Positions 25,451 through 64,000 of a stretch of 64,000 nt of DNA are shown here, in pieces. Below the pieces are notes generated by a model. It did no database searches. It was given only the letters and a program-made list of their open reading frames with translations, and had not been told where the DNA came from. The first letter of the stretch is position 1, and every line of letters begins with the position of its first letter. Both the position numbers and the translations under genes were made by a program. Source of the stretch: Hemiscyllium ocellatum (Eukaryota); assembly GCF_020745735.1 (NCBI RefSeq), contig NC_083409.1, forward strand, positions 19,178,341 to 19,242,340, given 5' to 3'.

Positions 25451-25720
25451 ATTTGGCAATGTTTGGAGAGGAGTATCTTTTGATTGTAATGTACTGATGG
25501 TGTTTCGCCTCTGGTTTTCTTCAGTTTCTTCCTGTCAACTGATGTGAATTTCAGTCTCAGCAGTCTACTAGTTTCCTCATTCAATTGCAGTATTTAGAGT
25601 TCTCAGACATGTGCAGTTTTGGCAGGGTTTCACTTAACAGGCAATCATCCCGATAAGATGGGCCATCTTTTTGAACAGCAGTGGCCCTTGTGATGGTAGT
25701 AGGTGATTTGGGATTAAATA

Positions 25721-30311: not shown

Positions 30312-30326
30312 ATTCCCCCTGTCTTT

Positions 30327-32210: not shown

Positions 32211-32229
32211 ATAGTCAGTTAATCAAAGT

Positions 32230-34040: not shown

Positions 34041-34399
34041 AAATCATATCATGAGAGAAAAAAAAAATAACGTTGAGCATTCATAAAATTACAATCAAAA
34101 ATAGCACACTGAATCAAATGACAAACAACAAGTTTCACACATAAAACCATTAACAAACAGATGAATTCAAGCCAGAGCACACAGTGTTAAACTGCTTGTT
34201 AGCTAAGAAGCCTTTTAAAAAAAAATCCATACACAAACACAAATTCTCACATCCACAGAGACTTTTTTTTACAATCAAATTTACACACACAAAGACACAC
34301 ATAAATCTTCACCAACACAAAATTCCTATCGGGGGCCGGCCCACAAAGACATAAATATTCAGATTTAGATAACCACCTTATTTATCTGACTCCTTTTGT

Positions 34400-36449: not shown

Positions 36450-36769
36450 GGTTGATCTTCAGGCTAACCTACACTCTGGTTACTCAATTAACCCTTGTAT
36501 CCCGGTTACCTGTCACAACCACCGAGTCGACAAGGCAGTGTACCCTTCTCAATTCCGCGAAAACCCCAAAATACCAGAGAAGGTTCGTATCTTGATCCTG
36601 TGCACGGAGTTGTCCGACTCAAAGTAAAAAATCACCTTTTTACTTTTTCGAAGATTCAACCTTTTTACTTTATTGCGAGCGCCACCTATTCACATCGTTT
36701 GCTCAAACATCTGTGTGTGTCACAGTGTCCCAGAATCATTCAGAGCCTCCCGTGGGAGTTCTGTTTAGG

Positions 36770-36789
36770 ATCCCGGACACGAGCCCCCA
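36770..36789 (-). promoter_or_regulatory. Primer-binding site, tRNA-Pro type
   Basis: Minus strand TGGGGGCTCGTGTCCGGGAT versus canonical PBS-Pro TGGGGGCTCGTCCGGGAT (2-nt insertion), 4 nt from the LTR end. Confidence 0.85.
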
Positions 36790-36793
36790 AATT

Positions 36794-37905
36794 TATTATA
36801 AGTGTTTTCTGTCTAGGCTTTCTGAATCTCCGGAGAATAGTTCCTGACACTTGGCTAACTATTCTAACTCTAGGGATCTGATTCAGAACAACCGGGTCCT
36901 GCCTCCGAACTCTGCCAACCGCGGACTGTCCTTTAACCCTTGTGTCAAGGGAGACTGTCCGCAAGGTTAAGTTCAAAAAGGCGAACTCCAAGTTGACTGG
37001 TATCAGCCCTTATCCCCACCGGCTATCACTTCTCCCGTGGCAAATCGAAATACTGCGAGACACACACAAACGGAGCAACAGATGTTTATTCAATCTTCGA
37101 AGATTGGGCGAGTTTCCAAAAAGGACTTCAGAAATCGCAACGGGAGATTTTACAGCACTAATACTTATACATTATTTTTCCATTCAAATACATTGGTGAT
37201 AATTTCATTGGTTTAAACATCTCACGCTATGGATTTTTCTTACATTAAAAATCATTAATGACAATTCCATTGGTTAAAGCATTTCACGCTTTTCTCTGCC
37301 AATTTCTTTAATTAAAATGTTATATTATTTTACAATTTCTGCTATTTGGTATCTTCATGTTCTACTAGTTATAACATTTATTGATTTTTGTGTATGTCAT
37401 GAAAAGAGCTTTCATTGTATTTTGCCCTCTGTGTCTAATCGAAGCATTCCTTGGTTTCTTGCCCAAGGTTACCATGTTCCTGGCTTTACAGAGGTAACTT
37501 CTAGTTCATGCTTCATTATGGCCTAGTCAATCTTTAGTTTCATAATTTAGCTTCTATTCATTAAACCTCAGTTTTAGTACAGAAATTACCCCACTCATAC
37601 CAAGAGAGAGTGTGTGTGTGTGTGTGTGAGTGAGTGTGTGTGTAGGTGTGTTTATGTGTGTGGGTTTATGTGTGAGGTGTGTGTAGGTGTGTGTATGTGT
37701 GTGGNNNNNNNNNNNNNNNNNNNNNNNNNNNNNNNNNNNNNNNNNNNNNNNNNNNNNNNNNNNNNNNNNNNNNNNNNNNNNNNNNNNNNNNNNNNNNNNN
37801 NNNNNNNNNNNNNNNNNNNNNNNNNNNNNNNNNNNNNNNNNNNNNNNNNNNNNNNNNNNNNNNNNNNNNNNNNNNNNNNNNNATTACATTAACCATATTA
37901 TATCA
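36794..37905 (-). repeat. 5' LTR
   Basis: Near-identical to 29165-30311; terminal CA reads TA here; contains the same simple repeat and an N gap. Confidence 0.92.
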
Positions 37906-41390: not shown

Positions 41391-43023
41391 AGTTTATTGT
41401 TATTGTCAGGAAAATTCCAAAGCTGGACCCATGGTAGAGTGATAGAGGTGTACAGCGCATGAAAGGACTCTTTGGCTCAGGTCTTCGCTGGTCAAAAGCA
41501 GCCACCTGACTATTTTGATCCAATTTTCCAGCACCTGGTCCATTGCCTTGTGCACTTTGACATCTCAGTTGTACATCTAATTCAATGTCACAAGGGTTTT
41601 TGCTTCTAACACTCTTACACCACTCCCTGCTTGAAAACACTGCTCCTCCTATTCCTTTTGCAATTAAATCCATGCCTTCGGATATTGATCACTCCTCCCA
41701 AGGGGGAAGGTTTTTTGCCCCATCTCCCCTGATAATGCCCCTCATAATTTTATACATCTTGATCATGTTCTCACTCCATCTCCTCTGCTGCGAGGAATCT
41801 GTTAATGAAAGCAATTGGGGAAATTAATATCAGAAGTTAATATCAGACTTGAGGTTATTGTGCAAAGATGAGTGGCAGGTCAGATGATTGGTCAGAATAT
41901 GAAGATAGCAGATAATAACTAAAATGTTAATCAGGGGAAAGAAATGAATATGGGTAACTTGCTTTCAAAAGGTTCAGCACTCCTTGGTTTTTAGACAGTT
42001 TTCTCACTTCAATCCACAATCAAAAATACAGAAAATTGAAAAGATCTGGTCTTTACATAGTTTATTTACCAGTATATCCAGGGAAAAAGTGAGGACTGCA
42101 GATGCTGGAGACCTGAGTCGAGTATGTGGTGCTGGAAAAGCACAGCAGGTTATGATGAAGGGCTTATGCCCAAAATGTCGATTCTCCTGCTTCTCGGATG
42201 CTGCCTGACCTAAGAATGTCCCTTTTTTATTTGATAAAAGGCCAAATTAAAGGTTATTACTGAAAGTAATAACTCATGTTACAAGAGTTTAACATGTTAC
42301 CATAAATAGGAGATTGGCTGGGAAACAGGAAGAGAGTCGGCATAAGTGGGTCTTTTTCAGGATGGCAGAATACAATAAGTGGTGTGCCAAAGGGCTTGGT
42401 GCTGCATCTCAACTGCTTACCATTTATAAAATTACTTGGATGAAGGGATGGAAGATGAGTTCCCAAATTTCCTAACAACACAAGAAGAAAAGTAGGCTAT
42501 GAAGCAAACATGAGGTTGAAAACAGTTTCCAGTAGTTTAAGTGTGTGGGCAAGGATCTGATTTAGTTGAAATGTTGTGTGGAGTTTCCACATGCTGACTT
42601 CTTTAATTCCATGCTGTACATTTCTACACATTCTATCTTCTGTATCATAGCCCTGCTCGCTGATCACCCTCTTGTTACTTATCTTCATTCTCTGCCTTAA
42701 CCCAGTCCTTCAGTTTCAAAGTTCCTATGTACAGATTTGTTTGTGGCTCCCGTATACTTTTCCAACTCTTTTCTGCCCTGCACCCCCTCCATATCTCAGG
42801 TCATTCTGTCTGCTGAACATTTTAGCTCCATACTTCCCAGTCTCACCCTGACATTTCCTGCTTCTTAGCTTCCAGTTTCCCTCAAAATATATGTTTGACA
42901 CCCTGCATGTTTTCTAGTTCCCCTTTGATTCCTGCCTGGGTCTATCCTAAGAGTTTTTACTGCAGGAAACATGCTATTTTAACTTGCATTGTGTTTGATT
43001 CATTATTTTTCTTTCATCCCAAG

Positions 43024-43138
43024 TTGCGGCACATAGAAAACAGGCTTGAAGCTGTACCCACCACTACTGCAGTGACAGACACGGTGATGGATACTAAGAA
43101 AGCTTTGAGCAGTGCTACACGAAAAATTAGCAGACTGG
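43024..43138 (+). CDS. CEP350: CEP350-like coding exon (LRHIENRLEAVPTTTAVTDTVMDTKKALSSATRKISRL)
   Basis: ag|...|gtaagt, phase 0 to 1; matches human LRHIENKLEVAPTSTAVCDSVMDTKKSSTSATRKISRK as recalled. Confidence 0.92.
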
Positions 43139-43664
43139 GTAAGTGAAAGGAATACAAAATGAATTGTTCATGTTAATTAGATCAACAGTTACTCTTGACC
43201 TCATGCTGGCCATTCTTAATCAGATAAAAGTAATAACCCTAGTGAAATTAAGTTAAGTGGTCGAGGGTCATGCACTGCCATTTTGCAGTGTTTTGAAAGC
43301 ATTTGCAACAGAGACTGAGGCTATGGAATCTTTTCCTTCTCTCTAATTTATGGAGCTTCATTGGTAAGGCTTAGCAGGCAAAGTCAACCCTCCATTCCCT
43401 TCCTGAAGTGGTCATCTCCCCCTTCCATCTGTGTCAACACCTGTTGCCCTTTGCAGATTCCCCCCAAATGTCTGGTTTATCACTTTGTGCTGGTCCACAG
43501 AATTTGAGGAGGTGGGCGAGAAGAATTAACTTAGCATCTATCTCTTCTATATTCTGACAGCAACAGTTTAAGAGAAACTTGTGCTTACTAACCAAAGCCA
43601 TTGATTGTGGTAATGGAATGCATGCTCCTTTTTTACTTCTTAACTTTGTTTCTATTTCTATCAG

Positions 43665-43836
43665 ATGGAAGGTATCTGGAGGATTCTGTAGCCAGTGCTA
43701 CATCTGTCAAATCTAGTAGTCACAGCAAATCACGGAAGGTCAACACCTCCCGCAGTCCCTTGCGATCTGCCACCCTGGAAAGTAACATTATGAAGAGCAG
43801 TCGAGATGAATTCAGAGATCCATTAACTGCATATAG
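43665..43836 (+). CDS. CEP350: CEP350-like coding exon (DGRYLEDS...RSPLRSATLESN...EFRDPLTAYR)
   Basis: tcag|...|gtatga, phase 1 to 2; matches DGRYLDD...RSPLRATTLESN...EFREPLVSYR. Confidence 0.92.
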
Positions 43837-44843
43837 GTATGACCAGACGTATGTACCTTCTGTCGATCACTTTCTGTTATCAATTCCTGAAGCTGTGCAT
43901 ATATTAGAAACAACCAATACCTGCTTGACAGCTTATAGTTGCACTCTTCTGACACTCAAATCACAACAGAGTCAACAGTGGCAGGATAGATACATAGAGG
44001 ATCCCAGGCTTCAGAATGCTTGTTCTTTCACACGTAATCTCATCCGAGGGTGTAATTTTAAAGCTCTTGCGCGCAAACATTTTCTGTGCTTATGACTTTT
44101 TACAGTGTGTTCCAACTTGTGTACTAATTGACTTGCAGATGCACTCTAGAACAGAAACCATTTGTAAACTGGGGTCTGCCAGTAGCCTGAAACATGGGCA
44201 CAATTTCAAATATGGAATAATAATAATAGAACGTGGTTACAAGAATCCTTTGCTGTATAGCCCACCTTAGTTGATTCTGTTTGGTTTTTGTTCAATGCTC
44301 ACTGTTCTGTGAAACCAACTATTAATGGAGATACGTTAGTGAAGCTCAGTCTTGTGCAGTATTTAGATCATCATCAGTTCATCAGAGCCATTAAGCTTTT
44401 ATAAATTGGGACTGGAGTACAAAAATGAATGATGTTAAACCATCACAAATCACTGGTTAAGCTACAGTTAGAATGTTGTCCCCAGTATTGGGAACCCTAA
44501 TTCAGGAAGGACTTCAAGGCTGTGCACAGCAACCAGAAAGTGTTAACTTGACATTCGTTGATTATAGTAATCAAGAGAGTTTCGATAAGTTGCTGATCAT
44601 TTTGATTGAACAGTGGTTCAGAGGAGACCTCAAACCTGGTCAGGATGTTGGAAGAACTGCTTCTACTGGTGGAAGAGACAGTAAGTAGATGGAAAATACA
44701 AGGTGAAGTTATGGAAGTCACCAAATTAATAAAGTTACAGACTGTCATCGGTATCATGTTTCATTTCAAGGGGAGGCGATGGCCGAGTGGTATTAGTAAT
44801 AATCCAGATACTCAGTACATTTTAGTAAGCCTACACTGGATAG

Positions 44844-45019
44844 GTCAGGCAGCATCAAAGGAGCAGGAGAATTGACGTTTCCAGCATAAGCCCTTCTTCA
44901 GGCTTATGCCTGAAACGTCAATTCTCCTGCTCCTTTGATGCTGCCTGACCTGCTGCGCTTTTCCAGCAACACATTTTGCAGCTCTGATCTCCAGCATCTG
45001 CAGTCCTCACTTTCTCCTG
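44844..45019. mobile_element. Fold-back Penelope-tail insertion with 10-bp TSD
   Basis: Perfect 40-bp inverted repeat (44842-44881 / 44912-44951); TSD cactggatag (44834-44843, 45020-45029). Confidence 0.85.
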
Positions 45020-45781
45020 CACTGGATAGTCCAACATATGTTGAGCTGGGGTGAATTCTCCTTGCTGCTCATAGAAATTGGATTCTTGTCATTTTTTGGA
45101 CTTCATCAAGGGGAAATTGTCATCAGTGAGCATTTGCTTTATGTAGTGCATGTGATTTTGGAAACTCTTCAGCTCTTGTATAATTGTATGCTGTCTGCTG
45201 ATGTGCATGTGATGTCGTTGTCCTTTATTTTTCCTCTGGCATCCCAGAGAGCTACCAACCGTACGGTGGCTAGTGTGATGGTAGTCACTGATGAATCCTC
45301 TTGATGACTCATATGGATTGGTAAACCCAAAGGGCCTTTTAGGCCTTGGCAAGTATGTTGCGAAGCTGTTGTCTGGGTTGTCAGGTTTGGCAGGTTCATC
45401 AGCCTTTAGGCTGCTGTGTCCAGTCAGTACATTGTTGTTTAAATTTAAGAGTGGGAATGGTATTGTAGAAGATTGGCTTTTGAGAATAGTAGAGGGAACA
45501 TGGGCCCATCCAGTAAGGATGGCTGTTTATCCTCATGAAGGGCTTGTGCCGGAATCATGGAGTGTCCTCTTTGGATGCTGCCTGACATGCTGTGCTTTTC
45601 CAGTGCCACAATGTTTGACTCTGTTTATCCCTAATGCAGACTAAATCCTACAGATTGTTTAAAGCAGAGCTTCAGCAAACAGGTACTTGATGGCATGAAA
45701 TCTGCAGTGTTAAATGGTTTAAGTGATGTCTCATTTTGGCAGTTGTCAACATTTGTGATTGTGTAAATTTTGTGCTTTCAG

Positions 45782-45990
45782 TGCTCACGGGAAGTCATCA
45801 AAGAAAAGCACAAGCTCTTCATCATTCCATTCCACTGTGAGTTCCATGTCTCAGAGCACTTTTCAGAATGACGCAGTGATAACATCCAGAGAGGGGACAA
45901 GGCAGCTGCGTGCTACTACCTCCACACCTTCACCTTCTCTAGTCGACATCAGTGTTACTGCAGCCAGGCCCTCCACATCCTCTGCTGCAG
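45782..45990 (+). CDS. CEP350: Probable CEP350-like Ser/Thr-rich coding exon (SAHGKSSKKST...STSSAA)
   Basis: tttcag|...|gttgga, open frame, phase 2 to 1 fits both neighbours. Low complexity, so the homology is weaker than for the other exons. Confidence 0.65.
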
Positions 45991-46888
45991 GTTGGAACTC
46001 TTGGAATCATGTTTTCTGTAACTGTCATTGGTTTGTCCCAACCGTCTCCATGGGAGTAGTTTTTAAAAAAAATAAAACCCTGAGTAAGTAGACAACCCAT
46101 GTGAAGTGACAGGCATAGTGATGACTGGATGAAATGGTGAGGTGCCACGCGACGTGGAAGCAGGTGCTTTTCCATTCAAGTGGTCGGATCCTGTCTGAGG
46201 AACATTAAGCAGAAGTAGGCTATTCGGCCTGTTGAGCCATCCCCTGTCATTCAGTATAATCATGGCTGATCAGTGCTTCAGTATCGTTTTAGCCACCCTG
46301 TTCCCATCACCCCGTACACTGTTGGAAATCAAATCCGTCAATTTTTACATAAAACATAATTGATGACTATGCTTTCACAACTCTCTGTGGCAGTGAACTC
46401 CAAAGGTTCATGACCCTGAAGTAACAACAGAATTATCATCAGCTCAGCCTTATGACATGGTCTCACTTATCAGTTGTCCCACCAGTCCTAGACTCCCCAA
46501 CAGGGGAAACGTTACCTACATCTACCCTTTAAGTATCTCATAGATTTCAATGAAATCAATTCAAAATGCTGGAGAATGCAGGTCCAGTTTTCCCAATCTC
46601 TCTCCATGAGAATGTCCTAGAAACAAGTTTGGTGAACCTTTGTTGCATTCCTGATCATTCACCAGGACCCAAATACAATGATTGGGTTTGGATCTTCTGC
46701 ACGCTTTGCTATTTGTTGTATCCTGTGAATCTCATGAAAATTTCAATGTCTTGTCCCTTGTCATTTCTTACGCAATTCCCGAACTTGTTTTGAATCCTGG
46801 AGAGGTGTGCAGTTAACCCCATGTTCCCAATGCATTATTTAACTCATTGTAAAAGTTGGAATTACACTTTTCATTTTGGTTATTGCAG

Positions 46889-47052
46889 CCTCGATGCTCA
46901 GCTCCCCACCAAGTATCCAACACCACATGACTGCTCAACACACTTACTTGGATGCTATGGAAGAGTCCATCCGTCAGCTATCAGAGATAGACATGACCCG
47001 GGGAATAGCCTTTGCTCAACAAGAGACTGTGTCATTGGCTCAGATCCTAAAG
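46889..47052 (+). CDS. CEP350: CEP350-like coding exon (...YLDAMEESIRQLSEIDMTRGIAFAQQETVSLAQILK)
   Basis: tgcag|...|gtacgg, phase 1 to 0; matches YLNAIEESVRQLSDVERVRGISLAQQESVSLAQIIK. Confidence 0.93.
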
Positions 47053-47592
47053 GTACGGGTCTATGCCTTGTGCTCTTTCAGAAATGGTTTTGTGAAATTG
47101 TCTTAAGTGATCATGGCTGCGCTCGTTTTCCAAACCAGGCAACATTCTGAGCAACGTTCTTCAGTTAAATCAGGCAAAACAAAGATTATTCCAAAACTAG
47201 AGATTAAACTTACTTAACCTTGGGTTGTGATTTAGGACAATGCCTAATCTTAAATGTGCAGATATTAGCATCGAACCTGCGCATGACTGCACTTTCCAAG
47301 TTGACTGATAGAAGCAGGGCAAACTTGCCAAGTTTTCAAGTAATTTCAGCTTTCTAAAATTTGAGCCATTATGATGAGATTTATGAGAAAATGTTTTTTT
47401 ATTTATAAAGTTGCAATATTAAAATTAATTGATTAAAATCTTGTCATTTGTTACTCTTAAGATTTTGATGCCTTTGCATTTCAATTGTTACTCTCTCTCT
47501 CTGGACACTGCAAATTTAAATACCAGTTTTTCACAGAGCAGAGCAATGGAATGTAGGGTGATGCTTCCTATTTAATCTTTGTTTGTGTCCAG

Positions 47593-47703
47593 GCCCAACA
47601 GCTGAGACATGAGCACGACATAGCCCTGCTGAAGCTGAAGGCCGAGCAGGAAGCTGCTGCAAGTCAGAGGCAGCTAGAGGAGGCCAGACAGAAAACTGTA
47701 CAG
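47593..47703 (+). CDS. CEP350: CEP350-like coding exon (AQQLRHEHDIALLKLKAEQEAAASQRQLEEARQKTVQ)
   Basis: ccag|...|gtactt, 37 codons; matches AQQQRHERDLALLKLKAEQEALESQRQLEETRNKAAQ. Too short for the ORF track. Confidence 0.93.
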
Positions 47704-49849
47704 GTACTTGAACATGTAACAGGTGTCTGGAAATGCAAATAATTCAGTGTTGACTGCTTCTCACCGTGCAATCAGAATAAACAAATTATAATTATAAAGT
47801 GCCTTTAACATTGAAGCCAAATCTCTCCCCACCCCTGCCCTGTTGTGCTCCACTGGTAAACTGCCCCACTCAACATCATGAAGATGTCATCATGAAAATC
47901 AATGACAGGCCCAGACCATGGGGACAGTAGAAGGTACAGTTTTAGAAGCAAAAACATAGTTTGCTGGTGACACTCAGCAGCATCTGTGAGAAAAAAGAAG
48001 AGTTAACATTTCGGAGATTCTTTAGAAAACCTGGACAGATTGTAAGACCTTAAGGAGTGAATTCTAAAGACTGAGACACACAACTTGATGGAGTGGGGTT
48101 GAACAAGATGACATCAGGAATGTAGATGATGAGGGAGGTTATAGGGCTGGAGCAGGTTACAGGGAATGGGACAAAGGGAGGTCATGCTGACTTTGATTTG
48201 GGCGAGTAAGTTTGGAAGGTTGCAAGGTTCCTGTGTTTTTACCTCTTGGAATTCTGTATCTTAAGAGTCAGAAATCTTAATCAAAATAATCCTTGCTATT
48301 GTTCTTAGTTACTTGTGCAAGCTTGCTCCTGTGTTTTAATGCCTTAATGACAAGTCGTGAATTTGCATTCTGTAATTCTGGTGATCTCGAGGTGGGCCAT
48401 AAAGGCCGGCTTGCTGGCATAGTCCTCAACCCAAGAACAATTCAAAAAAAGGCTGCAGTCTATTTTAGTGTCTGATTGACAGTGGGTCCTTCAACTATTG
48501 ACCATTCAGGCACTGACATTTGTTTACTGAACCTGAATGTGTCTCTGTCTTTCTTCAAGAAGCTCCTTAAAAACTATGTTTTATCTGAGCACTTCTTATG
48601 TGGCTACTTGTCATATTCTGTAATCATGTTCCTGTCAACGTCCATGGGATGTTATAGTATAAAGGTGTGATACAAATGTCAGTTTATCTCATTGTGAATG
48701 CAACTGCCTCTGAATGAAAACATTTTTGTTTCAAGCCCCATGCTTTGACTTGAATGTAAGCCACTCAATCTAGAGCAGGACTGCTGCATTCTTAGAGATG
48801 ACACCTTTCAGGCAAGACATTAAAGCAAGTTCCCATCTTCTATTCCAGTGGATAGAGAAGATCCGTTTTAATACTTGAAGAAGTCTAAGGGAGTTCTCCT
48901 GTTATCCTGCTCAATATGAATCCCTCACTATTGTTGATGCTGTCTTTTTAGGAGCTTGTCAAAAGGCCCTTCTTGGACAGCGTGACTACATTTTGAAAGA
49001 ACTCCATTAGCTGAGAAGGACTTTGCAATGACCTGAAGATGTCAATGACACCGTGAAAACTTTAGCTTCTTTAAACGGCAGTTTTTGCTTCAGATTGTCC
49101 CCATCTGAGGAACACAGCGCAGAACTGCCTCTGATGCCATATTTGTGATTTCTTTGGTAGAACCCACACAGAGAGAGTAGAACCATGAGGATAAGGAGTA
49201 TCCACTTGACCAATAAAGATCATGGCAATAAAAATAGACTGCAACTTTTTTTGAATTGTTCTTCAGTTGAGGACTATGCTAGCAAGCAATGGCCTACCGA
49301 GAGATCACCAGAATTGTGGAACGCATATTCACAACTTGTCATTGGGATATAGGAACAAGAGTAGAACAATCAGCCTCTTCATTCTCTTATGCAACTGAGT
49401 TTAAATTTGTTTATACCGAAATGCCCTTTCGCTTTTCATCAGCCTTATCCCTCAAAACACATGAAAAAGCATCAAATGGAAAAGTTTATGTCATGCAAGA
49501 TATTCAAAATTTTAGAGGATTTTAAGAAGTGTTTAAAGGAGGAAATGGAGCTGAGAGATGAACAGGTCTAGGAAAACATTATGATGGAATACTCCCCACT
49601 TTCCTGGAGGAGTGCAGTTCCAGCGATACTTAGGAAGCTCAACATCATCCATTACAAAACATCAGCATGATTTGAATCATGTCCACCACCTTAAGTGCCT
49701 ATTCCCTCTGTCATCAGTATACGGTAGCAACAAGGTGCACCATCTATAAGATGCTCTGCAATACCTCATTGAAGGCTCCCTTGACAGACCTGGACTCATG
49801 ACCTATTCTGTCTGGAAGAACAGGGCAGCAAATATAGAACATAGAACAT

Positions 49850-50280
49850 AGAAAGGTACAGCACAGAACAGGCCCTTTGGCCCATGATGTTGTGCCGAGA
49901 TCGAATCCTAATGTAAAATACAGTAACTTAACTTGCGCACCCCCTCAACTCACTGCTATCCATGTGCATGGCCAGCAGTCGCTTAAGTGTCTCCAATGAC
50001 TTTGCTTCCACCACCACAGCTGGCAACGCATTCCATGCATTTAAAACTCTCTGCATAAAGAACTCACCTCTGACATTTCCTTTGTACTTTCCTCCTAATA
50101 TCTTCAAACTATGGCTTCTCGCACCAGTCAATCCTGCCCTGGGAAAAGTCTCTGGCTATTACTCTATCTACTCCTCTCATTATTTTGTATGCCTCGATCA
50201 GGTATTCTCTCTTCCTCCTTCTCTCCAGAGAGAAACATACAAGCTTATTCAAGATTTCTTCATAAAGCAAGCCCTCCAAT
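49850..50280 (-). mobile_element. CR1 (HER1-like) LINE 3' end
   Basis: Tail microsatellite atagaacatagaacatag; ORF ...QRVLNAWNALP.... Confidence 0.8.
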
Positions 50281-50891
50281 CCAGTGCCCGGGAATGCCAG
50301 TGTAGTTATGACATTAAATTATGTTGCTCTTCCTTTGCTGCCTACAATGGTCTGACATACATTGGGAGTACCTTGCAGCCACATGGATTGCCATGGTTGA
50401 AGAAGACCACTAACTTTCACCTTTTAATGCCAGTTGTGGTTGGACAGTCAGTGTCAGGGACATTTACATCCTGAGAATGAATTAAATAATTATTTCCTGA
50501 TTTTTCAGTTCTGAATGGTCTGGTTTTTAGTTTTAAGGTTGAATACATCTCCCCATCATGGAAACAATCTCGCAATACCATGACCAGGTTAAATAAAAAA
50601 AACCAAAGAAGTGCACATACTGGAAATCAAAAAAACAAAATCACACGATGACTAGGTTACTGTGCTTATATGTGACATTGGAGGAGAGGGAAAGGCTTAA
50701 AAGCTTGATTGTAAAACAGAAGCCATATCAGTGAGCTTATGTTGCATGATGAAACGTGATGCAAGTTGAATGCAGTGTGCTTCCTGGATCATAAGTCAAT
50801 TTCACATTGCATTTTAATAGTGCTTTGTCTCTTGATTAAAGTATCTGAATTATCAATTGCTGGATGTGAAAACCTCTCTTTGTGTTCCCAG

Positions 50892-51023
50892 GCATGTGCA
50901 GAAAGTCTGCAGCAGTTTGTACAGGTTCGCCAAGAGATGCTGCAAGAGTCCACAACTAAAATGATCACTCAGCAGGTGGAACTTGCAAGGCTGATGGCTG
51001 ATACAGCACGTCAGGTTACAGAG
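50892..51023 (+). CDS. CEP350: CEP350-like coding exon (ACAESLQQFVQ...ARLMADTARQVTE)
   Basis: ccag|...|gtactt, 44 codons; matches VHAESLQQVVQ...ARLTTDAARQICE. Confidence 0.9.
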
Positions 51024-52269
51024 GTACTTTCTTCTAGTGTACTTGGCAAGATGGCCCTTTCCCCCAGTCATGCTGAAGAGCCAGTACTTTCTAGAGTTTT
51101 GAAGGAATTTCTCTCATACAGTTGCTGCATTGAGTTAATTGTCACTGCAGTTTGAAATTATTTCATTCCTCTAATGTAGTAAACTGTCAAGGAAGAGCAG
51201 GGCAAAGCTTAACAGCATACCATATGATATTATGAAAGATGACCAACTGCTTGGTCAAAGAAATAGGTGAGATAGAATGTTGGAAAGGAAGAAAATGTTA
51301 CTATTTGAGCTGCGTTAGGACAGAGTTGCATAGCTGATGACCATGCAGCTGAAAGCTTCAGTGCTGAGCTGGGGTGGTGAAAATGAAAATGCTAAAATGG
51401 AGAACATAGACACTTTAAAAGTTTCGAGGATTGAAGGAAATTGCAGAGATAGAAAGGAAAAATATGTGCGGAAGGACAGGACTTCTTATACTGAAGCTGT
51501 TGGCAAGTCATGAATCAGCAAGCACAAGGATCGTGGGTAAAAGGGGCTTGGAAAGAGGGTGCAGTAAGTGGAGCTTTTGAATATGTTGAAGTTGATGAAA
51601 GTTCAGTCAAGAGAACATTGGGATAGTCATGTCTGGAAGTGAACAAAAAAGTAAACAGCTGAGGGTGCAATTTTGGGTCATGTGATGGAAGAGTTTATTG
51701 AAGATAAGAATTCCCGTTGGATGAGCTCTGTAGTAGGTTTCCATTATTCATGGAGGGAATTGCCTTCGTATTCATGACTGCATAGCTGTGATTGATTGAT
51801 AAATGCCATCGGAATCAATACATCAACACCCCATTTTCACTCCTTTTCACAACGTCTGAGATCTTTTAACACATTGTCTCATGCTCCCCTTTGGAGAAAA
51901 GAAAGCATGAAATGGAGCCTCAAGGAATCGGAGCATGAGTAGGGTATTCGTTCCCTTGAGCTTGCTCCCCCATTCTATCAGATCATGGCTGGGCCAAACC
52001 AGGCCACAACTCATCTTTTATGCTTGATCCTCATAGCCCTCAACTGCTTAATATTTCAAAACTCTATCTACCCTCTTTTAAAATAATTTGATATAGCATC
52101 ATAGCATCATTGCTTCGGCTGAGCAATTCCACACCCACCCTCCGAAGAGTAACCCACCAGAACCATTCCCCTACCCCATTTAGTTGTCACAATTTTTTGG
52201 GCGATAGAATCCCAGCCATTCACTGAGAGAGAAAAAAAATCTTTATTTTTTTTAAAAAATGAATGTTCC

Positions 52270-53520
52270 CTTCTGTAATGTTCCCTGGGTTGAGACTTCA
52301 CTGGTACTCGAACATCTAGTCAACACCAACCCCTGTCAAGCTCCTCAGAACACTGTTTCCATAAGATCACCCATTATTTGTCCAGACTCTATTGAATCAT
52401 GACCTAACCTATTCTTGACAGACCAACCTTTTCATCCTTGAAGCAACTAAATGAATCTTTTTTTGAGTGGCCTCCAATGCTAGTTTATCCTTTCTTAAAT
52501 ATGAGAGCAAACATTGTATACAGTACTCCAAGTGAGGTCTCAGCAACAGCCATTGTGGTTAACCAATCCTCAGTCCATGCTAATAAATGACCCCCGGTGC
52601 CGTGAGCTCCTATCTTGTGCAATTAACTTTTATATAGCACCTTATCAAATGCATTTTTAAAATACAAATACAGAACATCATCAGATTCTCCTTTATCAGC
52701 CCTACATCTTATCTCCTTAATGAACTCTAGCAAATTTGTCAAATTATAGTTCCCTTTCACAAAATCCAATCTGCTATGTTTAATGATAAGCTTTTCCAAA
52801 TGTCCTGCTATTTCTTCCTTTAATAATCAACTCTGCTGTTCTGCCAAAACAGATATTAAACTAACTTTCCTGATTTCTGTCTCCCTCCCTTCTTGAACAG
52901 CGCATCAATCCACTGGAAGCTCCCTGTATCCACTGATTCGGGAATAATTCAATTGATGCCTTGAATATCTCTGCAGCCAGTTTCCTTCAAAAATGTTTGA
53001 TACAGGCCATTAGGTCCTGTCTGCCTTTAATCCTATTAGTTTGTCATTACTTTGTCCCTTGTGACAAAGACTGTTGTAGCATTTTTCCTCCCACGAATAC
53101 CTTGCTTTTTGCTATCTTTGGGATGATAACGGTATTCTCCTCCATGAAGACCAAAGTAAAATATTGGTTTAAATTATCTGCTGTTTTCCCTGTACACATG
53201 ATCAATTCCCGAATCAGAACCTCCAAGGGTTCGATGCTCACTTTAGCTACTCACTTTTTACATACCTGTAGAAACTTTTGCCTTTCGTTTTGGTTTCTTG
53301 TCAATTTAATTTCATGCTCAATTTTTTTTTCCTTTTTCGTCCTCCGCTGCTGTGTCGATCTTTTCCTTGTGGGTACTGTCCTTGACTGCCTTTGTTACCC
53401 ACGGGTGATTCACCTTTCTCTTAGAGTTCTCCTTTCTGCCTCAAATAAGATTTTGCTCAGCATTATGAGAAAAGCCCATCATATCCCAGTGACGGAGCAT
53501 GTGATTTTTTTAACACTGGA
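52270..53520 (-). mobile_element. CR1-clade LINE fragments
   Basis: CR1 ORF2 remnants, e.g. KADNLNQYFTLVFMEE and gtatacagtactccaagtgaggtctc. Confidence 0.7.
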
Positions 53521-53804
53521 TGCTTCAATTTTAATGATGTTCTCATTGGTTTTTGCTGTTTCACCGAAGAGCTGAGATCACCTGGAAAGGAGGTGGCAGC
53601 TGATTCAGGTTTAGTTCCAGAATTAATTTGAATACTTGCAAAAATAAATTACTTGCAACATTGTGAGAGCAGGGGTCTAGCCAAATAGCTATTCCAAAGG
53701 GGCGGCACACATGTGATGGGTTGAGTAGGGGCCTCTGATTTCAAAAGCAAGATGTGATCCAAGTTGTCTTCTAACCTGTGCTGTGCTAATTCTTGCTGGT
53801 TTAG

Positions 53805-53965
53805 ATGACTGAGTTGGCATGTGCGCAGGTTGCAGCAGGATCTCTGACTGCCACAAACCCACCTCATGGAACAGCTCCTGTGCCAGTGACAGTGCTGCTG
53901 GACCAACAGAGGCAGCAACATTCAGACTTCATGAACCAACTTCAAACCAGAACTGAACCTGACAG
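53805..53965 (+). CDS. CEP350: CEP350-like coding exon (MTELACAQ...LDQQRQQHSDFMNQLQTRTEPDR)
   Basis: ttag|...|gtaagg, phase 0 to 2; matches MAELTRTH...YDHQRQHLPDFVKQLRTRTETDR. Confidence 0.9.
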
Positions 53966-54126
53966 GTAAGGTTTTCACACTGTCCCAAACCTGATCAATA
54001 ATATTAAGCTTCATGGCTTCATAACCTAAGGCTTGTTGCTTGATGCGATGCACAGTTTTTGATGTTTTCGCTATTATCTGTGATCAGGAGAGGCAGGATC
54101 AATGCACTCAGTCTTTTAGGAAAAAG

Positions 54127-54476
54127 GAGGTGGCTCAGTTGTTAACACTGCTGCCTCACAGCGCCAGGCACCCAGGTGACTCCAGCCTCAGATGACTGTC
54201 CGTGTGGAGTTTGCACATTCTCCCGTGTCTGCAGGGGTTTCCTCTGAGTGCTCCGGTTTTCTCCCATAATCCAAAGATGTGCAGTTGAGGTGAATTGGCC
54301 ATGCTAAATTGCCCACAGTGTTCAGGTATGTGCAGGTTTGGTGCATTAGTCAGGGGTAAATGTTGAGTAATAGTGTTAAGGGATAGGTTTGGTTGGGATA
54401 CTCTTCAGAGGGTTGACGTGGATTTGTTGGGCCAAAGGGCCTGTTTCCACACTGTAGGAATTCTATTCTATTCTAT
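54127..54476 (+). mobile_element. HE1-like V-SINE
   Basis: tRNA-like head, V-domain gtgtggagtttgcacattctcccg..., tail attctattctattct. Confidence 0.9.
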
Positions 54477-55718
54477 GATCAGAGTAATTTTGGGGGTCTA
54501 ACAGAATCCTAGTATTCAGAGGACACTCTGTTAGTTAAAATAGTATTGTGCACTCTTACCTTCTGCAGCAATTTGAGGTAGACTGCTCTGTACAGTTTCT
54601 TCAAATATTTTGTTCTTGAACCAGTCAGGGACTTGGTAATATGATCGATTAATGAGTTCAAAATTAAAGACCCTTTTGGTAAGATTCAATGCAGCACAAT
54701 AGAATTTAGCTTTAGGCGAAGGAATTTGGTTCTTGAACTAGTATCTAAAGTTAAAGGCAGTCACAAGGTTATAAAGTAATAGTGAGCTAAATGGGAATGG
54801 GACAAGAGGTTAGAATGTTAAAGCAGAAGAACCTATTCACTTATTTCATAATTCTCAACAATGTACATTTATTTATAAAAGAAATGCACGATGAAAAGGT
54901 GCCAACAGCGGGGCATAGCTAAAGGAATTGTGGGTGACATCAAATTGAAAGAAAAGATATACAAAACTGCAAAGGTGGTGGTAGGCCAGAAAATTTGAGA
55001 ATTTCAAACTATCGAAGGATGAGCAAAAAACTGCTGAAAGATACTTTGTCCCTTGTGATAGAGACTGTTATAACATCTTACCTCCCATTATATACCTTGC
55101 TTTTTTCCCACCTTTGGAATGGTAACAATATCTTGTAGATTAGTAAGATAATTGGGCAAATTATCCCACGAGTTACTCAGTCTAAAACAAAGTGCTCTTG
55201 TGATGCTGTGGTCATTTCTCCAACTTTGAGCCAGAGGCCTGGATAAATCCTACCTGCTCCAGAAGTGTTGATTAGGAAAGAAACATGAGACAAACTTCAC
55301 TGATTTATTGTACAATCTTGATGGTCTCTGGAAATTCCAAACTTGACTATTTTGTATCCTCACCTGAGGCCTGATCTCAATTAACCCATCTCATTTAAAC
55401 TGAATTGCCTTTGCTTGTGTTGAATATAATTGAAGTTTGTCCTGTCTGCACGCTCCCTTGTGCAAAACCTGTTGCAATCTGTCAAAGAACAAGATTGTAA
55501 ACTCAGATTAGCTGGTAGTCTGTTTAAGGGACAGTAGGTGTTGCAGTATTGATCCCATTTTCCATTGAACTGAGACATGAGATGGTGAGCTTGCTGACAT
55601 GTCCTTCACTGAAAACATTGTTTGAATTAAAAAAAAACTGCTATGGCTGTGGTGGAATTGAATCTAGAGACTTAGCTAGAAGTAGCTGTTCGTTGTTTCT
55701 TTTTTTGTTTCATCGTAG

Positions 55719-55841
55719 AAAGAACGAGTGCAGCCCAACACCAGCTGGATCTGCAGAGAAACTGCCAGACACTAAAATGCGTAACTCCACTTTATTAGAC
55801 AGTCTGACTGAGTCATCCAGACTCAAACATCATGATCGGAG
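55719..55841 (+). CDS. CEP350: CEP350-like coding exon (KNECSPTP...LDSLTESSRLKHHDR)
   Basis: gtag|...|gtgggc, phase 2 to 2; the end matches YDSYSESSGYKNHDR. Confidence 0.82.
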
Positions 55842-55940
55842 GTGGGCTATTTATGTTCGCTGTGGATGCTTTTACAGAGTACAATATTAATCCAAAACAT
55901 ATCTCTTGAGTACTGAAAACAACAAATACTGGAGATCACA

Positions 55941-56254
55941 GTGGGGAGGTGATGGCCCAGTGGTATTATTGCTGGACTGTTAATCCAGAGATCCAGATAA
56001 CATCCCGGAGAACCGGGTTCGAATTGAATTCAATAAATATCTGGAATTAAGAATCAAATGACTATGAATCCTTGGTCGATTGTTGGGAAAAACCCATCTG
56101 GTTCACTAAAATCATTTAGGTAGGAAACTACCATCCTTGCCTAGTTTGGCCTACTCTAGACACACAGCAATGAGGTTGACTCTGAACTGCCCTCTGGGCA
56201 GTTAGGGATGGTCAATAAATGCTGCCTATTCAGTGACACCCTCATCCCATAAAC
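55941..56254 (+). mobile_element. Deu-domain SINE (SacSINE1-like)
   Basis: A-box tggcccagtgg, B-box gggttcgaat, Deu-like core cacagcaatgaggttgactctgaactgccctctg...gggatggtcaataaatgct. Confidence 0.8.
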
Positions 56255-56269
56255 ATATTATTTTTAAAA

Positions 56270-56420
56270 ATCCATGGAGAGAGCAAGCTAACATTTGGAG
56301 TCGAAATGACTCCTTATCAGAGCCCTGATAGAGTCATCTCGACTCGATGTTAGCTTGCTCAGTCTCCATGGATGCTGCCTCATTTGCTGTGAGCTCCAGC
56401 ATTGTTGTTTTCAGTACAGA
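56270..56420. repeat. Fold-back Penelope-tail pair (gagtc...gactc family)
   Basis: Inverted arms 56270-56320 / 56325-56373, both starting at a decayed CTGAT(G)A core. Confidence 0.75.
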
Positions 56421-57059
56421 TTCCACCATCTGCAGTAATTTCCTTATATATTTCTTCTGTATTTTGTTTATTAAATGTCCACTAAATTGCAACTCCTACT
56501 CAACACCTTCCCGACAGAGTACTGTGGTCCTAGTGCCAAAAACCTCCATTGACTTGTTCAATTACACCATACGTTGGGGAAATTGCAAAATGCCACTGTG
56601 GCTGAAAGGAATGGAATCAGAGTCATACGACATGGAAACAGACCCTTCGGTCCAACTCGTCCATGCCAACCAAATTTCCCAAACTAAACTAGTCCAATTA
56701 GCCTGCATTTGACCCATATTCCTCAACCTTTCCTATTCGTGTCCCTCTCCAAATGCCTTTTGAATATTGTAACTGTACTTGCATCTACCACTTCCGCTGG
56801 CCGTTCATTCTGTGTCCGACTCAACCTCTTTGTGAAAAAGTTGGCAACTGATAGTTTCACTGTTGCCTACGGTGAGTGAATCGCTGGGGATTATTGTTCA
56901 TTAAGGACCACCCCTTGCTGAGCATGGCTCAGGGCCTCAAGAGATTCCTAAATGTGGCTTCGGCCTCCTTGTGGGTTACCACATGCTACACAAGGCCTTG
57001 TGTTTGAGAAGCGCAGGGATATATGGATGGGGGTGCTGTGGAAGGAAGGAGGCAATGTT

Positions 57060-57700
57060 AATTAATGAATTAATTTATGGAATGTGGATGTCACTGGCTG
57101 TGCGAACATTTATTGGCTAATTCTAATGCGCTTCAGAAGGTGGCTGTGAGCTCCCTTTTTGAATCACTGCAGTCCATGTAGGCCGACTGGTCGTGCTGTT
57201 GGGAGGGAGTTCCAGAATTTTGGCCCAATGACACTTAAGGACAGCTGAAAGATTTTCAACTCAAGATGGTAGTAGCTCGGAAGGGAACCTGTAGGTGGCG
57301 GTGTTCCCATGAATCTGCTTCCATTGACTTCAAGATGGTACTGGTCATGGGTTTGTAAGATCCATATTGAAGTGTTATGAATTTATGCAGTGTATCTTGT
57401 CGATAGTACACACTACTTCCCTGGGCATTAGTGGTGGAGGGAGTGAATGCAGTCTGCATTTTCCAGCTGACGTCAAGCTTCTTGAGTGTTCTTGGAGCTG
57501 CACCCAAACCAAGCCAAGTCACGAATAGTCTATTGCACTTCTGACTTGAGGATTGTAGATGGTGGACAGGCTTCAGGGATTCGGGAGGTGGTTTATTTTT
57601 GCAGGATTCATTGCCTCTGACCTTCTCTTGTAGCCACAGTAGTCAGATGGCAAGTCCAGTTCAATTTCTAGTCAATAGTAACCCCCAGAATGTTGATGGT
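57060..57700 (-). mobile_element. CR1/L2-group LINE fragment
   Basis: ORF ...ADSWEHRHLQVPFR...; same family as 22170-24420. Confidence 0.65.
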
Positions 57701-58388
57701 GAGGAATTTGGTTATAAAAATGAGTCACTAGCAGTAAATGATACCGGTTCATCAGGTTACAAAGAAAAGTTGAGCATGGGTTTATTTCTGGGGCTACAGA
57801 ATGGAGATGTGTTAGATATGTGTAGAACCGTGAACAGATCACCCTTGGAGCACTGCAAACAGTTCTGATCCATTGTAATATGGATGTAGAGGCAGTAGGG
57901 AATATATTAAAATATTTTCTGGAATTATATCAAAACTGAATTTGAATCCATCAAGCAAGATTGGACAGTCTTGTCTTGTTGAAAAAGAGTATCATGGTCG
58001 AGGCCATTAAGTTATGTCAGGGTTTGATAGGGTTGACATAGAAAAGATACTTCTGCTTGGGAATGACACTATCCACTGGAGCTGTGGATACAATTGTAGT
58101 CACTATTACATCCAACAGGGAATTTGCTGGGGAGGAGGTGTTGGGTAGTGGGGAAGGTCTTTACCCAGAAAGAGGTTTGAGGTCACAATTACACCACCAG
58201 GAATAATTGAAGCAAACAACAGATGAATTCAAGAAGAAGCTGGGAATACAAGTGATCGAAAAAAAATATGTTGATGGGTTTAGGTGGAGAGATACAGAAG
58301 GAGGCCTATGTAAATCTCAAATACCGAGACTCTGTTTTTGCGTTCTAAATCTGTGCATGTGTGTTGATCTGTGACATTTCTATGGCAG

Positions 58389-58549
58389 CAGTGGCAGCAG
58401 TAAACAAGACAGCCCGTCCGTACCATTCTTGGAGAAAAGCAGAACCTCCCACCATACAAAGGGAAACAGCTCTATTGAAGAGGTGGTTCAAACAGCAGCT
58501 GACAACTCGATCCACAGTGACAGTCTGCCTTCATTACCTGGTGAGAAAG
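58389..58549 (+). CDS. CEP350: CEP350-like coding exon (SSGSSKQDSPSVP...SSIEEVVQTAADNSIHSDSLPSLPGEK)
   Basis: Open frame, phase 2 to 1; matches SSGSSRQESPSVP...SSIDEQVQTAADDSLRSDSVPSLPDEK. The donor is GC (ag|gcgaat); an in-frame GT donor exists at 58540/58541. Confidence 0.88.
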
Positions 58550-59008
58550 GCGAATTCTTTAACCAGAAATGGTGTTTTGTCCTTTCACTGATCTCATGAC
58601 TTAAATGGGGATTTGTGTCTCTTCAATTAGATGATTCAAATCAACTGTCACGTAAGCACTCCTTCTATACCCAAAGGATATGTGTGTCAAATAGTAACAT
58701 GATGTGCACTAATTTATTTCAAGATTCCTTTATTCAGTCATGTGCTCAAGCTATTCAATCCAACTTCCTTGTGTTCCCCTTGGATCTGTGGTTGTGCAGA
58801 TGGAAACTTCCACATGTCCCCTTAAACAATGTGTGATTCAACATAACAGTTGTGTTGAATCAATAATTGTAACCCAGCTCTGCTCCTTGGGCAGAAAACT
58901 AATCCAAGGATTCTAGCTCAGCCTTTAACTTCATGTTCAAGTTCTAAATCTTTCAGTGAACAATGGAAAATAACAAAGAACAATGTAAATCATTTATTGT
59001 CTCTCCAG

Positions 59009-59193
59009 ACTCTGCTTCTGTTGCCACTGAGTTCGATGAGTCAATGACTGAGGATGAAATTGAAGAGCAATCCTTCCGTCCCCTTCTGCCATCAAAGAGC
59101 CATTGCTGCTTTAACATGGGGAAGAAACACAGGCAGCAGGATGATTCCGATGAGGACATACTGCAGGCTCAGTCAGCTTCAATAGCTGTCAAA
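59009..59193 (+). CDS. CEP350: CEP350-like coding exon (DSASVATEFDESMTEDEIEEQSFRPLLPS...DDSDED...K)
   Basis: ctccag|...|gtgagt, phase 1 to 0; matches DSTSIATEYSLKFDESMTEDEIEEQSFRSLLPSESHRRF, with YSLK missing. Confidence 0.95.
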
Positions 59194-60113
59194 GTGAGTT
59201 CTCCCATGGGTTAGCCAAGGGTGAGTGATGGTGCCAGTTTGTGGGATCTCAGTGCTTGGAATAGTTGCTCCTCTCCATGTTCTAGGTATCTTGCTATGAG
59301 ACTCAGATGTAGAGGATGAGGAGGAGATGGGTCAATGAGTATAAGGGAAGTGTTGGGCAGGGGCTGTTTTTTACAAATGATAATTACCACTCACTAACAA
59401 TGTTCCCAGAGTTTATAAATATTGAAGAGGAATTAATCTTTTACATTGTTAATCTTTGTGATCGAGTTACTGTGCAGTGAAGACAAAGATTAATATTTAC
59501 TAGGATTCCTTGCTCACCTCGTCCTGTAAACACAAGCTAAATTTGACTGCTAAGGATGTCCCTGAATTTACAACTTTCTACTGTCCATTAAAGGTGATAA
59601 TAAGATGCAAAAGACAAGCGGCGCTTGCAGAGGAATTTGATTTGAACAAGAGACATTTGTGCAGATAATAAGAGATATTCTAATTGGAAGGATATGGTTA
59701 GTGATATCTTGCATGGATCTATGTTGGAGCCCTAACTACTCGCTATTCATGATGAAAGGAAAGCCACATTCAAAACTTGGGGCCTCTCTCCAGATTAGCA
59801 GCGATCTCGAGTGGAGGTAGATGAAAGCATAAAATAAGAAAACAACCTTGACAGATGAAGTAAATGAAAAATCTACAGATGAGTTTGTGTCGGCAAGTGA
59901 GAGGTTGGATCAAGATAGGATATTTCTTGATTGTGAAAATCAAGAGACAGTGGAGTTCAAAGAAACTTGATGGGGGTGATCCAGCTGTATGTAGTTCATG
60001 AAAATGTCACAAACAGGCTCAAAAAAGTGAACAAGGATCAGTGGAATGTTGACATTTATATCCAAAGAAGTTGCAAAAGCAAAGGATTAGAAGTCATGCT
60101 TCAGCAATTCAAA

Positions 60114-60300
60114 GCTGTAAATGTGTTGCTGGAAAAGCGCAGCAGGTCAGGCAGCATCCAAGGAACAGGAAATTCGACGTTTCGGGCATAAGCCCTTCAT
60201 CAGAATTTCCTGTTCCTTGGATGCTGCCTGACCTGCTGCACTTTTCCAGCAACACATTTTCAGCTCTGATCTCCAGCATCTGCAGACCTCACTTTCTCCT
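60114..60300. mobile_element. 187-bp fold-back Penelope-tail insertion with 15-bp TSD
   Basis: 62-bp inverted arms (60114-60175 / 60203-60264, 2 mismatches); TSD cttcagcaattcaaa (60099-60113, 60301-60315); inserted into a CR1 remnant. Confidence 0.9.
60176..60203 (-). ncRNA. Hammerhead catalytic core forming the loop of the fold-back
   Basis: CUGAUGA-A-GGGC-UUAU-GCCC-GAAAC-GUC, identical to the 25782 motif. The helix I register is shifted by 1 nt relative to the native element. Confidence 0.7.
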
Positions 60301-61105
60301 CTTCAGCAATTCAAAACCGAGTCAGACCAATCCGTCAGGGCTGGGCACCATGGCTTAAGAAGAGTATCACTCTTCGTGGAAGTGCAATGTAGACTTACTG
60401 AAGTGATACTTGGGCTCCGAGGCTTAATTTAAGAAGAGAGATTAAATAGATAACATGTTAGAGTCAGAACATTGAGGTGTGATATTGTGGAACACTTTTA
60501 CACACAGAAATGGATGAAGTTTGAAACTCCCTTCCACAAACAGTGATTGATTTGAAATCAGTTACAAATTTTAAATCTGAGATTGTAGATTTTTAACCAA
60601 AATGCTGAAGGATTATGGGACAAAGACAGGGATTTGTCATGATGTTGAAGATTACCATGATTTGGGTGAATGGTAGAATAGGCTCAAGAAGCTAAGTAGC
60701 CACCTCCTGGCTAATGTTGATGTAACCATGACACCCTTATTCTCTGTATGTGCAACTCCTATTCTGTTTTTGGTTATTTATCAGAACCTGGCAGCAAATT
60801 AGTAACTGGAGTCCTGACCAGAAAATTATCAGTATGAGGGACTTTGCCAGTCTTAATGTGTTTCACAGATGATGAAATGAGACAGTCAGCATTTACTCAT
60901 CCTGATAAATATTGGGATAGTTTGATGGGATCACTTGTGATGCAGCATGATTGGCATATCTGATGATGCTCCAACTACTTTTATTGTTGTTGTTGTCTGC
61001 ACTCAGTCCTGAGGTTTTGTGGATTACAGGACAAGTTTTGCTTGGGTCAGGGGAAGCAGATCACCTCACTCTGTACTGTTTGTCCTCCTGTCTTTCACTG
61101 TTCAG

Positions 61106-61293
61106 CATGATTTGAGCATGTCCTACTCTGGAGGTCAAGACAGTTTCTGTAAATTCACCATGGAGATGGTGCAACAATACGTGGAGGAGGAGGAGACGCG
61201 TGCACAGCACCAGGTGTCCCTCCTCAAACTGAGAGAACAAGCCATGCAGGAAAAGACCAAAGCAGAGCTGGCCTGGTTGGAACACCAGAAAAA
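61106..61293 (+). CDS. CEP350: CEP350-like coding exon (...SGGQDSFCKFTMEMVQQY...EKTKAELAWLEHQKK)
   Basis: ttcag|...|gtgagt, phase 0 to 2; matches SGGQDSFSKFTMEMVRQY...EKTKAELAWLEHQKK. Confidence 0.96.
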
Positions 61294-62829: not shown

Positions 62830-64000
62830 AAACTTATGTTAGGATAAGATGTGAAGCTCAGTCAGAGTGCTTGAGAGTTACGGGTTAGCCAGGAAAGACC
62901 AAAAGAGAGAGCTAAAAAGGGACATGAGAAATCACTGACAGATAGGATCAAGGAAAACCATCAAGTTTTCTATAAGTATATCAGGAAGAAAAGAATGATA
63001 AGGAAGTTTAGGGCCAATCAAGGATAATTGTGGGATGTTGGACATGGAATCCGAGGAGATGGGGAAGCACTTAAAGAATATTTTTTGTCCATTTTTACAC
63101 TGGAAAAAGACAGTGTTGTCAAGGAGAATACTGCGATGCAGGCTATTAGACTAGATGGGATTGAGGTTAACGAGGAGGTGTTAGCAATTCGAGAAAGTGT
63201 GAAAATAGATAAGTCCCCTGGGCCAGATGGGATTAATCCGAGGATTTTCTGAGAAGCCAGGGAGGAGATTGCAGAACCTTGACCTTTGATCTATATGTCG
63301 TCATTGTCTACAGGAACAGTGCTAGAAGACTGGAGGATAACAAATGTTGTCCCCTTGTTTGAGAAGGGGAGTAAAAACAACCCTGGTATTATAGACGAGT
63401 GAGCCTCATTCGGTTCTGGGTAAGATGTTGGAAAAGGTTATAAGAGGTAGGATTTATAATCATCAAGAAGGGAATATGTTGATTAGGGATAGTCAACACA
63501 GTTTTGTGAAGGGTAGGTCGTGTCTCACAAACCCTATTGAGTTCTTTTGAGAAAGTGACCAAACAGATGGATGAGGGTAAAGCAGTTGATGTGGTGTATA
63601 TGGATTTCAGTAAGGCATTTGATAAATTTCCCACTGTAGGCTATTGCACAAAATACAGAGGCATGGGAGTGAGGATGATTTAACTGTTTGGATCAGAAAT
63701 TGGCTCGCTGAAAGAAGACAGAGTGTAGTAGCTAATGAGAAATGTTTATCCTGGAGTTCAATAACGGGTGATGTAACACAAGGATCTATTTTGGGTGCAC
63801 TGCTGTTTGTTATTTTTGACTCAGATGAGGGCATAGAATGATGGGTGAGTAAATTTGCAGATGACAAGAAGGTCAGTGGAGTTGTGTATAATGCTGAAGG
63901 GTGTTGCAGGTTACAGAGGGATACAGATAAGCTGCAGAGCTGGGCTGAGAAGTGGCAAATGGAGTTTAATGCAGAAAAGTATAAGGTGATTCAGTTAGGA
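62830..64000 (+). mobile_element. CR1-clade LINE ORF2 (RT), decayed, runs off the window
   Basis: KSPGPDGI, DFSKAFDK, WIRNWLAERRQ, VTQGSILGALLFVIF, KFADD; several stops and frameshifts. Confidence 0.92.

Follow-up and report, generated by a model that had tools for sequence, protein, structure and literature searches.

What is the CEP350-like gene that lies in a 64-kb window of Hemiscyllium ocellatum contig NC_083409.1 (the whole stretch of DNA analysed here, numbered from its first nucleotide): a working gene with a shortened product, a dead duplicate, or the genuine CEP350 locus incompletely recognised? CEP350 (CAP350) is a centrosome/microtubule-anchoring protein of vertebrates, and at 43024-61293 on the forward strand the window carried a version of its gene, hereafter mini-CEP350 or the copy, from which a large internal part was missing. 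The original prediction, made from the nucleotide letters, took it for a paralog still in frame after the loss of about ten exons, which may be expressed as a truncated protein or may be a young pseudogene. The copy was found to be a separate, fast-evolving paralog, non-processed and intron-containing, and not a working CEP350 gene. That it is a passenger duplicate of antibody light-chain cluster amplification, with no CEP350 function, is the reading we favor, at somewhat better than an even chance.

Exon anatomy of mini-CEP350 and loss of ten ancestral exons

Eleven exon-like blocks, each preceded by AG, were delineated within 43024-61293 (Table 1), and upon splicing they gave one open frame of 570-573 codons with consistent phases and with neither stop nor frameshift. 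The eleven exons, the 1,721 nt, the matching phases, and the absence of stops claimed at the outset were all reproduced, with the proviso that the total of 1,721 nt held exactly only when the ninth block ended at 58549, where the donor was GC. A strong, cryptic GT donor (G|GTGAGA) lay at 58541, 9 nt upstream of the GC donor, and its use gave a total of 1,712 nt. It was created by a D-to-G change (GAT to GGT) within 58541-58550, which gave rise to a consensus GT donor whose phase equals that of the lost one.

When the LDAMEESIRQL exon was searched against the whole protein library, it retrieved full-length CEP350 proteins, which were named centrosome-associated protein 350 (ray, lungfish, and gar) and were matched at about residue 1240-1390. 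In the tblastn comparison, for which the full-length CEP350 proteins of six sharks and rays served as queries, the blocks covered residues 40-134 and then about 1229-1722, each in a single frame, and residues 135-1228 had no match anywhere in the 64-kb window. The missing residues presumably made up most of the N-terminal microtubule-binding part of CEP350. The window ended 2.7 kb past the last visible exon (residue 1722), and nothing further within it matched CEP350; the CAP-Gly domain (PF01302) and the C-terminal targeting region, if the copy has them, would be located past the window end. A tblastn read-through past 61293, with TGA at 61295, was rejected as a chance extension, because the elephant-shark (Callorhinchus milii) exon ended exactly at this residue with a GT donor.

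The deleted exons were counted by mapping the Callorhinchus CEP350 protein onto its 70-kb locus. In that locus, the counterparts of the last block before the deletion (ending at 43836) and of the first one after it (starting at 45782) were separated by ten exons, and the 45782 exon itself corresponded to a separate ancestral exon (about 32.0-32.24 kb of the 70-kb locus). The exon boundaries of the copy were ancestral, its introns being retained at the elephant-shark gene positions across the 11 exons. Mini-CEP350 and full-length CEP350 shared the same boundaries and phases over residues 40-134 and 1229-1722, but the copy lacked residues 135-1228, the start codon, and a microexon (see below) and was 14% diverged from its parents. 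The predicted loss of about ten exons, roughly residues 133-1270, was right by both the locus count and the tblastn map. The statement that no N gap separated 43836 from 45782 was likewise borne out: runs of N occurred in the window at 30072-30288 and 37705-37882 only, with none in the 1.9 kb concerned. The codon at the fusion junction, AG|T, encoded the Ser with which the parental downstream exon also begins. The ten exons (parent residues 135-1228) would have been lost in an internal deletion that broke within introns on both sides and joined the intron that follows the fourth coding exon to the one that precedes the LDAIEE-region block; the frame would have been kept because the combined length of the lost exons happens to be divisible by three.

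A dispersed hairpin-forming repeat was recognised at 44841-45028, 45529-45635, 60109-60300, 25706-25815, and 42075-42212 (77-90% alike), the first two copies lying in the fusion intron; Rfam gave no match at gathering score in the window, the hairpin repeats included. The annotated Callorhinchus CEP350 seemed to use a 24-residue exon at 31951-32022 (frame 1) of the 70-kb locus, and the homologue of other sharks' residues about 1229-1307 was located at about 32067-32237 (frame 3), so that this record possibly contains a model or assembly error.

Full-length parents and phylogenetic placement

Full-length CEP350 of 3,286-3,289 residues was annotated in Hemiscyllium ocellatum, Chiloscyllium punctatum, and Chiloscyllium plagiosum (the parents). 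The Hemiscyllium gene spanned 130 kb on a 116-Mb chromosome, and the corresponding spans were 120 kb in the whale shark (Rhincodon) and about 136 kb in the zebra shark (Stegostoma). The three hemiscylliid CEP350 proteins were 97.2-97.5% identical mutually, and the copy was 85-86% identical to them over 570 shared columns. In the maximum-likelihood tree, the copy was sister to the three parents (support 100/99) and had a terminal branch of 0.14, compared to 0.015 + 0.011 for the parent over the same interval (5.4-fold). The approximately unbiased (AU) test rejected placement of the copy outside the orectolobiform parents (p = 0.002) and with Chiloscyllium (p = 0.014), and it did not reject placement with Hemiscyllium (p = 0.15); the duplication is therefore placed either on the stem of the hemiscylliids or within the lineage of Hemiscyllium. 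As judged from these sequences, the duplicate would have arisen within the bamboo/epaulette shark family (Hemiscylliidae). The supposed paralogy was upheld by the complete CEP350 of three hemiscylliid genomes and by the separate long branch of the copy. The description as a young pseudogene needed qualification as to age, since the copy, with a branch of 0.14 that goes back to one of these two points, is of no particularly recent origin; the pseudogene part of the description is weighed below.

The Chiloscyllium plagiosum protein XP_043540234.1 ('centrosome-associated protein 350-like'; 124 residues, on a 1.5-kb contig), of which only two exons are known, showed 90% identity to the copy across 91 residues. 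It displayed the derived residues of the copy (SPPS.QHHMTAQH in place of SPLSLQHRMTAEL) and read into the same intron sequence after its second exon; on account of these shared residues and this shared intron start, the lineage has at least one more member. A protein search with the 124-residue fragment matched only the fragment itself, and no annotated hemiscylliid protein of mini-CEP350 architecture was found with a 957-residue query among candidates of 530-1,675 residues.

Loss of CEP350-type constraint

A site-class test was applied to the 547 columns at which the three parents agreed, with invariance judged over 18 full-length vertebrate sequences. The copy differed from the parents at 73 of these columns, and the changed sites comprised 28/203 (13.8%) of those invariant in the 18 vertebrates versus 40/278 (14.4%) of the variable ones (Fisher p = 0.53); among sites invariant only in cartilaginous fishes, 7.6% were changed. 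In real orthologs (Stegostoma, Rhincodon, Scyliorhinus, and Heterodontus), lineage-specific changes affected 0.4-1.8% of invariant versus 4.5-10% of variable sites, a 5- to 25-fold depletion at the invariant ones. Since invariant and variable sites were changed alike in the copy, CEP350-type constraint was gone, and purifying selection on the vertebrate-conserved CEP350 residues is lost in it.

The hint of relaxed selection in the original prediction drew strong support from this uniformity over site classes, and the two differences cited for it, the loss of YSLK and the SHRRF-to-SHCCF replacement, proved real in the alignment to the parents. Fifty-five changes were resolvable to one nucleotide: 36 of them were transitions, and 13 (24%) were transitions at inferred CpG sites. 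The latter included both R-to-C changes of SHRRF to SHCCF (inferred CGC-to-TGC transitions), in keeping with the remark that these looked like CpG decay.

Decayed 5' end

Coding exon 1 of CEP350 persisted upstream of the eleven blocks as two tandem remnants (Table 1), which kept the conserved 5' flank GAGCTGACAAG in direct comparison with Callorhinchus. A tandem duplication at 37958-40263 (period about 1083-1103 nt, 84-98% identity) carried the remnant twice, and because TTG stood in place of the start codon in both copies, the start was lost before the tandem duplication. At 37-43 kb, Tandem Repeats Finder (TRF) did not report any array.

The elephant-shark gene has a microexon of 44 nt (residues 25-39) through which the frame passes from phase 1 into phase 0. 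No such microexon was found between the exon-1 remnants and 43024 by peptide and blastn-short scans, which gave chance matches only, the best peptide match falling in a dispersed repeat and not in an exon; exon 1 thus cannot join the next exon in frame, because the microexon is absent. The region of 37.9-43.9 kb had a GC content of 0.35-0.45 and a CpG observed/expected ratio of 0.06-0.4, and it therefore contained no CpG-island promoter.

Table 1. Coordinates of the CEP350-like blocks and of the immunoglobulin exon in the 64-kb window
Feature	Position	Strand	Evidence and remarks
CEP350 coding exon 1 remnant, tandem copy 1	38720-38792	+	tblastn to shark residues 1-24; ATG reads TTG
CEP350 coding exon 1 remnant, tandem copy 2	39803-39875	+	tblastn; ATG also reads TTG
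Exon, parent residues 40-78	43024-43138	+	89% identical to Hemiscyllium parent; AG/GTAAGT splice sites
Exon, parent residues 79-134, last before the deletion	43665-43836	+	Ends in phase 2; tblastn and splice map
Fusion intron in place of 10 ancestral exons and their introns	43837-45781		N-free; no parent-like coding remnant
Exon, parent residues 1229-1307	45782-45990	+	Starts in phase 2; two in-frame deletions (2 and 6 residues)
LDAMEESIRQL exon, parent residues about 1308-1362	46889-47052	+	tblastn, splice map, protein-library search
Exon, parent residues about 1362-1398	47593-47703	+	tblastn, splice map
Exon, parent residues about 1399-1442	50892-51023	+	tblastn, splice map
Exon, parent residues about 1443-1496	53805-53965	+	96% identical to Hemiscyllium
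Exon, parent residues about 1496-1537	55719-55841	+	tblastn, splice map
Exon, parent residues about 1540-1593	58389-58540/58549	+	Ancestral donor after 58549 now GC; cryptic GT after 58540
Exon with 12-nt YSLK deletion and SHRRF-to-SHCCF replacement	59009-59193	+	tblastn, parent comparison
Last CEP350-like exon visible in the window	61106-61293	+	Donor GTGAGT at ancestral exon boundary; Callorhinchus exon ends at the same residue
Immunoglobulin light-chain-type constant exon, intact	2537-2884	+	Pfam C1-set, E = 4e-20; best solved-structure match is a light chain

Passenger duplicate or working gene

The copy does not work as CEP350, because its start codon, its microexon, and the CpG island are gone and its changes ignore conservation. 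It is probably a single member of a family whose copies increased in number as passengers during amplification of light-chain clusters. What the comparisons above show directly is the anatomy of the copy, its separate long branch, and the constraint loss; the passenger mechanism and the lack of a protein function are inferred.

The state of the reading frame weighs against this interpretation on several counts: (i) several mutation models applied to the coding sequence of the copy gave a nonsense-to-missense ratio of 0.052-0.055, by which 73-81 missense changes predict 3.8-4.5 nonsense changes, and 0 were seen (P of none 0.012-0.023, in a test conditioned on a copy that had been flagged for its open frame); (ii) all four deletions on the lineage of the copy (2, 6, about 4, and 4 residues) were in frame, with P about 0.002-0.008 on the assumption that about 1 neutral indel in 5 is a multiple of three, although the one sitting in a poly-Ser tract is less informative; (iii) three inferred CGA codons had become CAA and none TGA; and (iv) 21 of the 22 splice dinucleotides were canonical, and the exon ends at 58540 and 58549 were both in frame, the cryptic donor being an in-frame replacement. 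The linkage to the immunoglobulin exon (see below), across 36 kb of transposon-rich DNA, is moreover circumstantial within the window. A dead gene this diverged would usually be broken. The frame of the copy is kept better than chance predicts, and the missing stops and frameshifts are unexplained by passenger status. They may reflect selection on the frame, a once-functional progenitor, or ascertainment, and some selection may have acted, either now or in the progenitor.

The same frame record, with no stop where about four are expected, four of four deletions in frame, an in-frame replacement donor, and splice sites kept, is what speaks for mini-CEP350 being, or having recently been, a working gene family, with a new 5' end, an internal or novel start, and selection on the open frame and not on the ancestral residues. 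The frame would then have been selected for a downstream domain or for avoidance of nonsense-mediated decay. We regard such a family as possible but on balance unlikely, because the substitutions ignored CEP350 conservation entirely, and the amino-acid rate was about 5x that of the parents, which would be near neutral if the ratio of nonsynonymous to synonymous substitution rates (dN/dS) in the parents is ~0.2. The 5' end points the same way: the ATG was lost in both exon-1 copies, which are themselves 2-16% diverged, so that the loss is old, and exon 1 has neither the microexon needed for joining in frame nor a CpG island. Neither an annotated hemiscylliid protein of matching architecture nor relatives of the 124-residue fragment came to light in the searches described above. 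Less credence still is given to a hemiscylliid family of translated mini-CEP350 genes that was co-amplified with the light-chain clusters, its frame and splice sites being selected and its ancestral residues drifting; if it existed, it would be a new gene family that originated within an immune locus and goes back to a centrosome gene.

Two further explanations would do away with the duplicate or with its deletion. An assembly artefact, with repeats collapsed or copies misjoined, could have made residue 1229 follow directly on residue 134, and a transposon-rich region holding a multi-copy family does invite misassembly; but the sequence between the flanking exons was continuous and N-free, their phases matched, the AG|T junction codon restored the parent Ser, and both flanking exons were equally diverged from the parent, which makes an artefact very improbable. 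That the window holds the genuine CEP350 locus, with the missing residues unrecognised by divergence or alternatively spliced, was a fair thought in so far as the original prediction relied on a remembered human protein and the 45782 exon is of low complexity and hard to recognise. It is refuted, however, for practical purposes, because the exons were 14% off parents that differ by <3% among themselves, in related sharks the true gene extends over 120-137 kb, and tblastn found no match for residues 135-1228 in the 64 kb.

Comparison with known duplicates and implications

The passenger reading, which we prefer, has its counterparts among non-processed pseudogenes and among passengers in amplified antigen-receptor loci, such as the fragments of non-immunoglobulin genes scattered through the human IGL locus. 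Like them, mini-CEP350 kept its introns, showed neutral-looking substitutions and a decayed 5' end, and had an immunoglobulin constant exon nearby, and an intact parent probably lies elsewhere, full-length CEP350 being annotated in three hemiscylliid genomes; unlike them, it contained no stop or frameshift in 570 codons despite about 110 inferred substitutions. The human genes SRGAP2C and ARHGAP11B are truncated duplicates with gained function, both of them 3' truncations. The copy is likewise a partial duplicate by segmental duplication with an open frame, but it has an internal in-frame deletion instead of a 3' truncation.

If mini-CEP350 is a passenger only, each of its copies would be a long neutral tag on an antibody cluster and a marker for the multiplication of light-chain clusters. 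If its frame is selected, it would be a rare example of a new gene family, derived from an essential centrosome gene through loss of exons in frame over roughly the lifetime of one shark family. Either way, 'CEP350-like' models in hemiscylliid genomes are not the working gene, which should serve as a warning for annotators.

Immunoglobulin and mobile-element context

The intact immunoglobulin constant exon (Table 1) was situated 36 kb upstream of mini-CEP350 on the same strand and ended in ...RRSECV followed by a stop. No V- or J-like (variable or joining) segment was found anywhere in the window, and no paper linking CEP350 to shark immunoglobulin loci was found in the literature. The intervening 36 kb was mostly mobile-element sequence.

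An endogenous retrovirus (ERV)-like element with open stretches of env (TLV_coat), reverse-transcriptase, and gag-like type occupied 29163-37704 on the reverse strand; the repeats at its two ends (29163-30071 and 36792-37704) were 99.0% identical over 913 nt, and each adjoined a run of N. Fragments of reverse-transcriptase retroelements were additionally present at 58-640 (reverse strand), 7436-8203 (forward strand), and 62875-64000 (forward strand), the last of them (62.9-64 kb) lying inside the intron that follows the last visible CEP350-like exon.

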